Assembly (NCBI RefSeq): GCF_006345805.1 | Contig: NC_043011.1 | Coordinates: forward strand, 16,814,464-16,878,463 | DNA length: 64,000 nucleotides | Direction: 5' to 3' | Source of the DNA: Octopus sinensis | Lineage: Eukaryota | In this document: positions 625 through 14,082 of the stretch, piece by piece | Position numbering within the stretch: the first letter of the stretch is position 1 | How the letters are laid out: each line of letters opens with the position of its first letter | The notes under the pieces: model-generated | What the model was told of the DNA's origin: nothing | The model's database searches: none | The model's input: the letters and a program-made list of their open reading frames with translations, nothing else | Program-made: the position numbers and the translations under genes

Positions 625-737
625 TATCTATCTATCTATCTATCTATCTATCTATCTATCTATCTATCTATCTACCTATCTATCTATCTATCTATCTATC
701 TTTCTATCTATCTATCTATCTATCTATCTATCTATCT
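625..737 (+). repeat. (TATC)n / (GATA)n microsatellite, array 1
   Basis: About 28 TATC units read directly, with two impurities (TACC, TTTC). Not preceded by the retroelement 3' terminus. Confidence 0.98.
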
Positions 738-2596
738 TTCGCGTAAATGGTCATCTATCCAGACCTTTTAACATCATGCGTTCGGTTCGTCAGGGATGCC
801 CCCTCTCATCGCTGCTGTATGTACTGACTCTTGAGCCACTACTGCGGAAACTGGCGACGCTGAGGGGCATCCCACGAGAGCTGGGATGCGGGAGGAGCGT
901 GTCTGCATACGCGGATGACGTCACCGTCATAGTGTCGAGCTACGAGCACATCGAGCTGGTCGGCGAGACACTGAAAGAATACGAAGCGGTAACGGGAGCA
1001 AAAATTAACCGGGAAAAGTCAGTGGGCTTGCGGCTCGGCACCTGGAGAAGCAAGCCCATGCCGTCCAACAGCGTCTCCATCGTGGGACGCTGGACGGACG
1101 GACCGGTTAAATTGCTCGGGGTCTGGTTCGGTCCGGACCTCCAAATGGAGAAGAACTGGGGCGAGATAACGACTAGGGTGGCTACTCTCACCCAGAAATG
1201 GACTGAGAGAAAGCTATCCCTAAAAGGTCGGGCGGAGGTGGCGAACGCGTACATCGCATCCGTCATCGAGTATCGTCTGACCGTCGTGCCTTGTCCCGAC
1301 CCTACCATCACCAAACTGGAACGCATACTCTTCCGCTTCTTGTGGAAGGGAAACGTTCCGATGGTTAGGCGATCCATTTGCTGCCAACACCCGCTAAATG
1401 GAGGGCTGGGCATGCCGTGGTTGATGATGCGCAGACATGCGCTGAGACTGCGACATCTCCGGCGCTTCATAGACAACGGTGAACAGGGGTGGTCGCCTTT
1501 TGTGCGGCGCGCTTTCCCGCAGCTCGTCTCCTTGGACGAACTACAGTCATGGATCAAGCAGAGACCGAGGCTAGGCGAATGGCACCGCGAGTGTCGCGTT
1601 GCTCTCAAGCAACTCTGCCGTCCGGGATCGAACTTGTGCGACTCCATCACAACAAAGGCATTCTATAGAGGATTAGTGGAGGGGAGGTGCGACGACGAAC
1701 TCGGGCAGAGTCTGGGCGTCGACGAGGAACACCTGACCCGCCTGTTCAGGACAACTTTCGGGCCGGGACCTATGAACAATCACCAAAGATCCCTGGCCTG
1801 GCAGTGCTATCGAGAAGCATTACCTGTTCGGGATAAGCTCTACAGACACGGTTCCAGACACACTGGACCGACTTGCCCGAGATGCGGTCAGAGCGACGAA
1901 ACCGTTCTGCACGCACTCGTGCAATGTCCAACCATTTCCGACCTGTGGGCTTATGCCGAACGGCTGCTGTCACGTGTGGGACGAATCCGCCTATCGGCCG
2001 AGTCTATCGTGAGAATTGCTCCGCCCCCTTCCCTCAACCGGGAAGGCAAGGCAGTTTTCATCGTACTGGTGGCCATGGTGAAAGAATGTGTGTGGTGGAC
2101 TCGAGCGAAAGGATTAGAGACAAACACTTACCTCTCTGGCCAATCGCTCATCAACTTTTTCAGGTACCACTTGAAAAGGAAGGTGAGAATGGAGAGGGAA
2201 GTTTTGTCTCGCGAAAGATTCAAAAAAAGATGGGTGAATGTTGCAAAGATGGTGCGTGCTAGTAACGAAACCATTTTGAGCATGATCCTGTAGATCGTAA
2301 AAAAGAAAGAAAGAGAGCATTTTTGACCTCATGTGTTTATTTCCTCCCTGACTGGGGTTCCCGTGGTCTTTTCTGTAGGCTTTTCTTCCCACGGATGAAA
2401 CCAATCTTGTTATATCAATGTTTACACCATTATTTCTGTGATACACGATTTTCTTTTTTTTCCTTTTTTTTCCTCCCCTCGATCCCTTTTTATCGCAATC
2501 TTACATTTTTTACTTTTTTCCACCCTCGAAAAGAAAAGCTCTGCATTTGTATTTGTCCCCTCTGTATTCAGTCCTGTGTGGCTAATAAAAGAAAGT
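738..2596 (+). mobile_element. Tx1/L1-clade non-LTR retrotransposon copy E1, 5'-truncated inside the RT domain
   Basis: Starts ttcgcgtaaatggtcatctatcc, homologous to the E3 RT region near 11945, directly after the TATC array. Carries the 3' half of ORF2 and a T-rich 3' UTR, and ends ctgtgtggctAATAAAagaaagt|tatc. Confidence 0.93.
776..2293 (+). CDS. E1 ORF2 C-terminal half (RT motifs and C-terminal zinc finger), uninterrupted but 5'-truncated
   Basis: Motifs VRQGCPLS and YADD; KLSLKGRAEVAN; CPRCGQSDETVLHALVQC (CX2CX8HX4C), typical of L1/Tx1 ORF2. Confidence 0.9.
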   Translation: MRSVRQGCPLSSLLYVLTLEPLLRKLATLRGIPRELGCGRSVSAYADDVTVIVSSYEHIELVGETLKEYEAVTGAKINREKSVGLRLGTWRSKPMPSNSVSIVGRWTDGPVKLLGVWFGPDLQMEKNWGEITTRVATLTQKWTERKLSLKGRAEVANAYIASVIEYRLTVVPCPDPTITKLERILFRFLWKGNVPMVRRSICCQHPLNGGLGMPWLMMRRHALRLRHLRRFIDNGEQGWSPFVRRAFPQLVSLDELQSWIKQRPRLGEWHRECRVALKQLCRPGSNLCDSITTKAFYRGLVEGRCDDELGQSLGVDEEHLTRLFRTTFGPGPMNNHQRSLAWQCYREALPVRDKLYRHGSRHTGPTCPRCGQSDETVLHALVQCPTISDLWAYAERLLSRVGRIRLSAESIVRIAPPPSLNREGKAVFIVLVAMVKECVWWTRAKGLETNTYLSGQSLINFFRYHLKRKVRMEREVLSRERFKKRWVNVAKMVRASNETILSMIL

Positions 2597-2643
2597 TATC
2601 TATCTATCTATCTATCTATCTATCTATCTATCTATCTATCTAT
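2597..2643 (+). repeat. (TATC)n microsatellite, array 2
   Basis: Pure TATC run (11 units plus TAT) between the E1 3' end and the E2 5' end. Confidence 0.98.
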
Positions 2644-2843
2644 TGACGGATGTGATGTCGTTTCAGCTCCGAAGGTAATCATTTATTTTGACTATTTATA
2701 GGCCAATTTTTGTGTAGATTTTTGCAAATAAGGTGTGTAAGGCAACCAACTTTCATTTGAGTGCTTTTCCAAGGGAGGAATTCGCCCCTAGGGGCAGTTT
2801 CGACCCCATTTCATTTCTGTTATTTTCTTCTCGACATTAGAAA

Positions 2844-13200: not shown

Positions 13201-13499
13201 TCAGCTGAGTCTATCGTCAATATTGTCACGCCTCCTTCCTTCAAACGGGAAGGAAGAGCTATTTTCATCATCCTTGTGGCTATGGCGAAAAAATGTATCT
13301 GGTGGACGCGTCTGAAAGGATTGGAGACAAACACTTTCCTCTCTGGTCAATCTCTCATCAACTTCTTCAAGTACCACTTGAAAAGGAAAGTGAGAGTAGA
13401 GAGGCAAGTTTTGTCTAGCGAATGTTTTAAAAAAGATGGGTGAAGGTAGCAAGAATGGCACGTATGAATGACGAAGTCACCTTGAGCATGACCCTATGA
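10204..13499 (+). pseudogene. E3 ORF2 (APE, RT, Zn finger) with a deletion of about 140 nt and several frameshifts
   Basis: Motifs GCVNARGL, ISETRL, GDWNA, YTDH, LDQSKAFDRV, QGCPLS, YADD, CPRCGQSDETVLHALVQC. Deletion near 11255 relative to E2 5836-5974. Confidence 0.93.
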
Positions 13500-13870
13500 A
13501 CCCAGAAATTGAAAACAGAGAGTTGCTTATTCGCAAAAAAAAAAAAAAAAGAAATATAACATGTGACTCCATTGACCGAGGTTACCGTGGTCTTTTCCGT
13601 AGGCTTTTCTTTCCACGGGTAAACCTCACCTGTCCTCCCCTTTACACTTCATGTTGACATTTCTGTGATAACGATCCCTATTGATCAATTTTTTTCCCTC
13701 TCCCCCTTTGTTTTTAACCACCCCTTTTTTTGTCCTCTTTCTCTCCTTTTACGATCCCTTTTGATCGAAACTCCCCCTTCCTTTTTTTTTTTTTTAAACC
13801 TTCAAAAGAAAAGCTCTACCTTGTAATTTGTTCTATCTGTGTGCAGCCCTGTGTGGCTAATAAAGAAAGA

Positions 13871-14082
13871 TATCTATCTATATAATATATATATATATAT
13901 ATATGTCTATCTATCTATCTGTCTGTCTGTCTGTCTGTCTGTCTCTCTCTCTCTATCTCTCAGTCTGTCTCTTTCTCTCTCTCTCTCTCTCTCTCTCTAC
14001 ATATATATATATATATATATATATATATATATATATATATATATATATATATATATATATATATATATATATATATATATAT
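13871..14082 (+). repeat. Compound microsatellite TATC-(TA)n-TATC-(TGTC)n-(TC)n-(TA)n
   Basis: Read directly; begins with TATC at the E3 3' junction. Confidence 0.95.

Follow-up and report, generated by a model that had tools for sequence, protein, structure and literature searches.

The cephalopod mollusc Octopus sinensis appears to carry a (TATC)n microsatellite that was hit three times, in the same orientation, by long interspersed nuclear elements (LINEs) of an octopod L1-superfamily, probably Tx1-type, lineage with a preference for TATC repeats. This is the reading that we favor, with moderate confidence. The nest lies near the left edge of a 64,000-nucleotide stretch of contig NC_043011.1 (positions 16,814,464 to 16,878,463, forward strand), here called the window. 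It consists of three copies with apurinic-like endonuclease (APE) and reverse transcriptase (RT) domains, termed E1, E2, and E3, all of which are on the plus strand and follow each other head to tail with only TATC arrays between them (Table 1). Preferential integration into TATC repeats at the nest locus is well supported.

Evidence for integration into TATC repeats

LINEs of the APE type integrate by target-primed reverse transcription (TPRT), and the DNA upstream of a copy truncated at its 5' end therefore corresponds to the target. E1 is such a copy and becomes alignable with E2 and E3 at 738-739, one or two bases past the last TATC unit of the leftmost array. Since homology starts at the array edge and the DNA left of 625 is unique, without similarity to the element, this array was the target of E1 and not the tail of another LINE. 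TATC is also found on the 5' sides of E2 and E3. All three copies are oriented alike with respect to the repeat, and each has the same microsatellite on both sides. Their 3' ends share the form ..CCTGTGTGGCTA(A/C)AATAAA..AAAG(T/A) and continue directly into TATC in a single phase, (T/A)-TATC, with the AATAAA signal 7-13 nt upstream of the junction; a poly(A) tail was found at none of the three ends. TATC junctions were thus present at 6/6 element ends, whereas TATC-type arrays beyond the nest amount to approximately 79 bp in approximately 50 kb of the window (approximately 0.16%).

The three insertions are also independent of each other. Pairwise identities in the second open reading frame (ORF2) are 79-86%, and the ratios of nonsynonymous to synonymous substitution rates (dN/dS) between copies, determined by the Nei-Gojobori method for seven ORF2 segment pairs, range from 0.10 to 0.25. 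Most of the divergence therefore accumulated under purifying selection, before insertion, while the lineages were active; copies duplicated in place are expected to diverge neutrally. In addition, the ORF1 regions of E2 and E3 are nearly unalignable as DNA, next to an ORF2 identity of approximately 80%, and the copies differ in their truncation, 5' ends, and internal deletions. The dN/dS values and the unlike truncation and deletion patterns indicate separate retrotranspositions, which excludes local tandem duplication as the principal source of the nest. As judged by these comparisons, E1, E2, and E3 come from distinct lineages that diverged while active and arrived in three retrotranspositions.

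Six exact array borders, three independent insertions, and the scarcity of TATC elsewhere are not explained by chance, and the arrangement of elements and arrays is non-random. An initial annotation of this DNA had described three L1-type elements in one orientation with TATC between them and directly after every 3' end, and had proposed TATC repeats as the integration site. The first two points hold for all three copies and for the arrays delimited by Tandem Repeats Finder (TRF), and the third is borne out for three co-oriented, independent insertions by the dN/dS values and by the 5' junction of E1 within an array. The same annotation had placed a further TATC array from 13871 onward. TATC does adjoin E3, for 2.5 units, but the right edge past 13870 is a decayed compound microsatellite and not a fourth clean array; its TGTC and TC runs reach 13998 and are followed by (AT)41 at 14001-14083.

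Table 1. Features of the TATC nest, window repeats sharing the LINE tail, and short elements of the Argonauta locus
Feature	Position	Strand	Description
(TATC)28.2 array	625-737	+	TRF; left neighbor is unique DNA; target flank upstream of E1
E1	738-2596	+	5'-truncated within RT; C-terminal half of RT and zf-RVT; ORF 776-2293 open, 505 aa
(TATC)11.8 array	2597-2643	+	TRF; spacer between E1 and E2
E2	2644-7873	+	Near full-length, decayed; 200-nt leader; ORF1 broken; ORF2 in three frames
E2 ORF1 remnants	2844-3413, 3728-4237	+	CCHC knuckle in 3728-4237
E2 ORF2 pieces	4781-5497 (APE), 5641-6660, 6576-7700 (RT)	+	
(TATC)80.5 array	7874-8190	+	TRF; spacer between E2 and E3; few TACC and TATCA variant units
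E3	8191-13870	+	Longest copy; ORF2 in at least 4 frames, at least 3 frameshifts
E3 ORF1	8202-9533	+	Open, 443 aa; weak CCHC knuckle
E3 ORF2 pieces	10204-11280 (APE), 11310-11645, 11642-12070, 12004-13443 (RT and zf-RVT)	+	
E3 right flank	13871-14083	+	TATC x2.5, (AT)n, TATC x3.5, (TGTC)n, (TC)n, (AT)41; TRF and sequence
SINE-like repeat	20389-20614	-	~228 bp; starts GGCGAGCTGGCAGAA.., ends ..TCTATGTTTAGCCCCTTGTGGGTAGTAAAGAAAT
SINE-like repeat	25352-25579	+	As above
SINE-like repeat	25794-26022	-	As above
SINE-like repeat	34488-34714	+	As above
SINE-like repeat	54301-54487	-	As above
Argonauta short element	L001 799-820	-	Shares LINE terminus GTGGCTAATAGAGAAATCTAT; 93-94% to LINE tail over 50-55 nt
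Argonauta short element	L001 1132-1153	-	As above
Argonauta short element	L001 13292-13313	+	As above

Structure and classification of the three copies

None of the three copies is intact. The 3' untranslated region (UTR) of E1 spans 2294-2596 (approximately 300 nt) and terminates in ..CTGTGTGGCTAATAAAAGAAAGT, and that of E3 ends at 13870 with the terminus ..CTGTGTGGCTAATAAAGAAAGA. E2 carries a T-rich low-complexity filler at 7706-7777 in place of approximately 820 bp comprising the ORF2 C terminus and the 3' UTR, followed by its 3' terminus at 7801-7873. The E1 and E3 3' UTRs contain T-rich runs as well, as does that of the distant relative L007 (T45). The 3' UTRs of E1 (2361-2394), E3 (13585-13618), and the closest external relative, L085 (approximately 983-1016), have a conserved inverted repeat in common, CCGTGG..(22 nt)..CCACGG; as a candidate RNA structure it was unconvincing, with folding z-scores of 0.39, -0.49, and -3.27.

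The Pfam domain order is Exo_endo_phos, RVT_1, and zf-RVT, with Exo_endo_phos matched upstream of RVT_1 in E2 and E3 (E = 1e-16 to 1e-18) and zf-RVT in E1 and E3. The motifs VNARGL, ISETRL, VYAP, GDWN, LDRIL, and TDH of E2 and E3 align to residues N14, E43, Y115, D145/N147, D205, and D229/H230 of the L1 endonuclease (EN), and the RT motif YADD is found in E1, E2, and E3 alike. The earlier description of the APE catalytic motifs of E2 and E3 as intact holds for these motifs only; the ORF2 reading frame is broken by frameshifts in both copies. The best relatives of solved structure are the human L1 EN (E = 1e-8) and, for the RT, human L1 ORF2p (E = 1e-12), with R2 reaching just 1e-3. By this domain content (APE, RT, and zf-RVT) and by these closest solved relatives, E1 to E3 belong to the L1 superfamily, as had been assigned previously.

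Within this superfamily, the lineage is probably Tx1-type. Tx1-clade ORF1 proteins are of the RRM/CCHC-knuckle type, and those of vertebrate L1 are of the Transposase_22 type. A single CCHC knuckle was detected in ORF1 of E2 (E = 5e-4) and, weakly, of E3 (E = 0.2-0.3), and Transposase_22 had no match in ORF1 even at E <= 5; a protein database search returned no ORF1 homologues, and a look-up of the window's own ORF1 gave no existing entry. These predicted ORF1 features are compatible with Tx1 and not decisive. A repeat survey of O. vulgaris lists 'L1-Tx1' as the sole L1-type category among recently active families, and octopus repeat surveys name L1-Tx1 families without target analysis.

Relatives, shared 3' tails, and the scope of the preference

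The best protein matches came from Argonauta hians, Octopus bimaculoides, and Acanthosepion pharaonis, which supports a cephalopod host. The close relatives found by protein search are located on short contigs only, plus one chromosome-scale contig of A. hians (L001). One of the short contigs, L006, has approximately 25x coverage in a tiny assembly, indicating a high-copy element in its host.

LINE 3' ends resembling those of the nest are also found on short interspersed nuclear elements (SINEs). Five SINE-like repeats in the window and three short elements in the Argonauta locus have homology to the LINE 3' terminus over their last approximately 45 nt. In Argonauta, 47/50 and 51/55 bases of the LINE and SINE tails are identical, as are 32/34 between L006 and a window SINE, and the tails of E1 and E3 are approximately 80% identical to the window SINE tail over 40-52 nt. 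This homology suggests a LINE/SINE partnership. RNAalifold predicts no pairs within the final 50 nt of the LINEs and SINEs, and a hairpin common to both was therefore rejected.

Several observations in the window and among these relatives weigh against a TATC-preferring lineage. The evidence for such a lineage comes from a single locus, namely, E1 to E3 within the window, and one locus alone leaves a local hotspot and a lineage-wide rule indistinguishable. Elsewhere in the window, two further arrays of the TATC type, (CTAT)7 at 42181-42209 and, in the opposite orientation, (AGAT)13 at 43704-43753, have no LINE inside. The relative on L003 (72% identical at the protein level) ends in ..GTGGCCAATAAAAGAAATC followed by (ATT)n to the contig end (2010-2105), and that on L006 (65-72% identical, likewise at the protein level) ends in ..AATAAAGAAACG followed by ATTATTAC at the contig end, also an ATT repeat (3860-3877). 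The full-length Argonauta LINE, located at approximately 4881-10653 of L001 and 60-64% identical in the C-terminal half of ORF2 (48% in the APE region), is flanked by an exact 17-nt target-site duplication (TSD), TATTTTTAAAATTTGTA (14-17 bp), in AT-rich DNA. No TATC array accompanies this copy, and a nearby (AGAT)15 array, at a distance of 1.5 kb, is unoccupied. The window SINEs reside in ordinary, non-repeat DNA, with neither a TATC array nor poly(A). Finally, the Argonauta terminus GAAATCTAT holds approximately 1.25 TCTA units before variable flanks, so that the repeat may be a tail of the RNA or element instead of a recognized target.

A TATC preference common to the close relatives was consequently not found. 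The initial annotation had proposed a family-wide GATA specificity set by the endonuclease; this proposal is not supported by the nearest relatives retrieved, which end in ATT or carry a plain TSD, or by the SINEs, which have the same tail and are dispersed in non-repeat DNA. The behavior of the relatives implies that the specificity, if real, belongs to the sub-lineage of E1 to E3 and not to the family. Among the remaining relatives, the contigs of the closest ones (L002, L005, and L085) stop short of the 3' junction, the end of L004 is ambiguous, and the distant families L007, L086, and L087 (36-60% identical; from an ENA assembly and from the cuttlefish A. pharaonis) show no clear adjoining 3' microsatellite. 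A metagenome protein scan with the lineage alignment, in a collection without the short Joint Genome Institute (JGI) contigs that carry the relatives, gave 225 pattern matches, none of which was confirmed. A DNA pattern of the 3' terminus had 53 matches in metagenome contigs and 24 in genome contigs, all prokaryotic or due to chance and without upstream similarity, and a scan of viral contigs detected no related element.

Tentatively, these data could be united by a single octopod L1/Tx1-type family that also provides abundant octopod SINEs with their 3' tail and whose sub-lineages would have switched targets between (TATC/GATA)n, (ATT)n, and, in Argonauta, ordinary AT-rich DNA with TSDs. As a separate observation, the 3' UTR of the Argonauta LINE is present in two tandem copies, ending at approximately 10285 and 10653. 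In the window, an inverted duplication of approximately 364 bp (25100-25585 versus 26151-25788; 98% identical) contains one of the SINE copies.

Alternative explanations

The main alternative, possible if on balance doubtful, is that (TATC)n is the 3' tail of the element's own RNA, which RT slippage and subsequent expansion of the microsatellite have extended. Pairing of UAUC with GATA would then guide insertion into resident tails or similar repeats, with the EN blind to GATA. All Argonauta LINE and SINE copies end in GAAATCTAT whatever their flank, the sister lineages end in ATT as tail drift would predict, the constant 3' phase is trivial if TATC belongs to the element, and the 3' end common to the LINE and the SINEs suggests that the RT recognizes that end. 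However, no LINE lies to the left of the array at 625-737, which is therefore not a tail, and the window SINEs have a homologous tail and no TATC repeat. Such a process would moreover still imply preferential insertion into TATC and differs from a TATC-preferring lineage just in what does the selecting.

It is improbable that the elements are not repeat specific at all and accumulated passively at a local hotspot, for example, through an L1-like EN that cuts at flexible TA steps where the DNA is open or recombines little. Such a mechanism was proposed for Waldo-A and Waldo-B of Drosophila, which are found near CA repeats. This precedent, the further transposon remnants just downstream of the nest (mariner-like at approximately 14456-14860 and an RTE-like RT at 15470-17855), and the location of the Argonauta relative in plain AT-rich DNA are in its favor, but it does not account for six of six ends exactly at TATC, in one orientation and one 3' phase, in a window where such arrays are otherwise so scarce, and the unrelated neighboring transposons lie outside arrays. 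An origin by tandem duplication in place, or by unequal crossing-over, of one element-plus-TATC unit with later decay would fit the head-to-tail order with repeat spacers, and microsatellites generally favor unequal exchange, but it is highly improbable given that most divergence preceded insertion, that ORF1 of E2 and E3 diverged almost beyond alignment relative to ORF2, and that 5' ends and internal deletions are unlike among the copies.

Proposed mechanism

If a TATC-preferring lineage is indeed responsible for the nest, the preference would be a property of the E1-E3 sub-lineage and not of the whole family. Its APE endonuclease may nick the bottom strand at 5'-GATA^GATA-3', and the exposed ...GATA-3'OH would serve as the primer for reverse transcription. 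An AATAAA signal is usually spaced 10-30 nt from the transcript end; given its distance of 7-13 nt from the junction, transcripts of a resident copy are expected to extend by a few units into the array that follows and to terminate in UAUC. Such ends could pair with the GATA primer and place the start of the cDNA in register and 5' of any poly(A). This pairing would account for both the fixed register and the missing poly(A). EN preference and pairing of the RNA tail with the target probably combine, and a model of EN preference plus pairing of co-transcribed target sequence has been proposed for other site-specific LINEs, co-transcription being known to aid site-specific integration.

Comparison with known microsatellite-inserting LINEs

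Published microsatellite targets of APE-type LINEs comprise ACAY for Waldo, AC for Mino, and TAA for Dong and, in the Tx1 group, TC for Kibi, TTC for Koshi, and TTCC and TTTC for crocodilian families (Kojima & Fujiwara 2004; Kojima 2015, PMC4494074), and target specificity has been assigned where more than 20% of flanks have the same sequence (Kojima 2015, PMC4494074). No LINE targeting GATA/TATC was found in the target lists of a review and two primary sources on microsatellite targets, or in literature searches, which agrees, within these lists, with the initial annotation, in which no described TATC-specific Tx1 family of cephalopods was known. The lineage of E1 to E3 is thus a probable new target motif within a known class of microsatellite-inserting LINEs, as judged against this literature.

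Clear parallels emerge with the teleost Tx1 families Kibi and Koshi and the crocodilian Tx1 families, which, like E1 to E3, possess APE and RT, have the repeat on both sides in a fixed orientation, and lack poly(A). EN specificity together with co-transcribed target sequence is presumed to underlie their targeting. However, the targets of these families are polypyrimidine/polypurine repeats, whereas each strand of TATC/GATA contains purines as well as pyrimidines, and their hosts are vertebrates, whereas E1 to E3 reside in a cephalopod mollusc, with the specificity deduced from one locus. Dong of the R4 clade, with its (TAA)n target, and Waldo (ACAY)n and Mino (AC)n of the R1 clade are also APE-type LINEs located in microsatellites. 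DongBg of the snail Biomphalaria demonstrates that microsatellite insertion exists in molluscs, and the ATT repeats following L003 and L006 are of the repeat class of the Dong target. In contrast to these R4 and R1 elements, E1 to E3 match human L1 ORF2p best and carry zf-RVT.

Another likeness is that to the 'stringent' LINE/SINE pairs of Okada and colleagues, since the last approximately 45 nt are common to LINE and SINEs in two octopod genera. As in LINEs with short tandem-repeat 3' tails, a short repeat unit forms the very 3' end in Argonauta; a poly(A) tail is absent from E1 to E3. The nest differs from such tail-sharing pairs in that the window SINEs are without a TATC tail and that its arrays reach 80 units and occur also upstream of the 5'-truncated E1. 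RTE elements, too, seed microsatellites and have them at their 3' ends, and the LINE described from octopus brain is an RTE, unrelated to E1 to E3. Human L1 (ORF2p; EN structure 1VYB) has the same domain order, and all EN catalytic residues align with those of E2 and E3; it integrates by TPRT with the primer pairing to the RNA 3' end. E1 to E3 differ from it by an ORF1 that is not of the Transposase_22 type, by the absence of poly(A), and by a target other than TTTT/AA.

Site-specific LINEs are natural models for the joint choice of an address by an APE endonuclease and a template RNA, and they provide leads for targeted gene insertion. A TATC/GATA lineage, if true, would add a mixed purine/pyrimidine repeat to the known targets, most of which are polypyrimidine or AT-only, and the differently behaving close relatives would form a compact comparative series. 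A target-switching family, if that tentative interpretation is correct, would comprise the first GATA-repeat-specific LINE and a natural series for mapping the changes in EN and 3' RNA that re-aim a retrotransposon. Should the nest be a one-off, it would be merely an ordinary transposon pile-up. The tail shared with octopod SINEs makes the LINE family a candidate autonomous partner of elements that form a large share of octopus genomes.

Neighboring sequence

Rfam and tRNA scans of the window gave no matches. Just downstream of the nest, a mariner/Tc1-like transposase remnant is located at 14456-14860. Next to it is a LINE of a different kind, truncated at the 5' end and on the plus strand (15470-17855), with RVT_1 at E = 1e-32 and an RTE-like C terminus (..RRLRWYGHV..); a 325-bp tandem repeat in 3.8 copies follows at 17917-19183.

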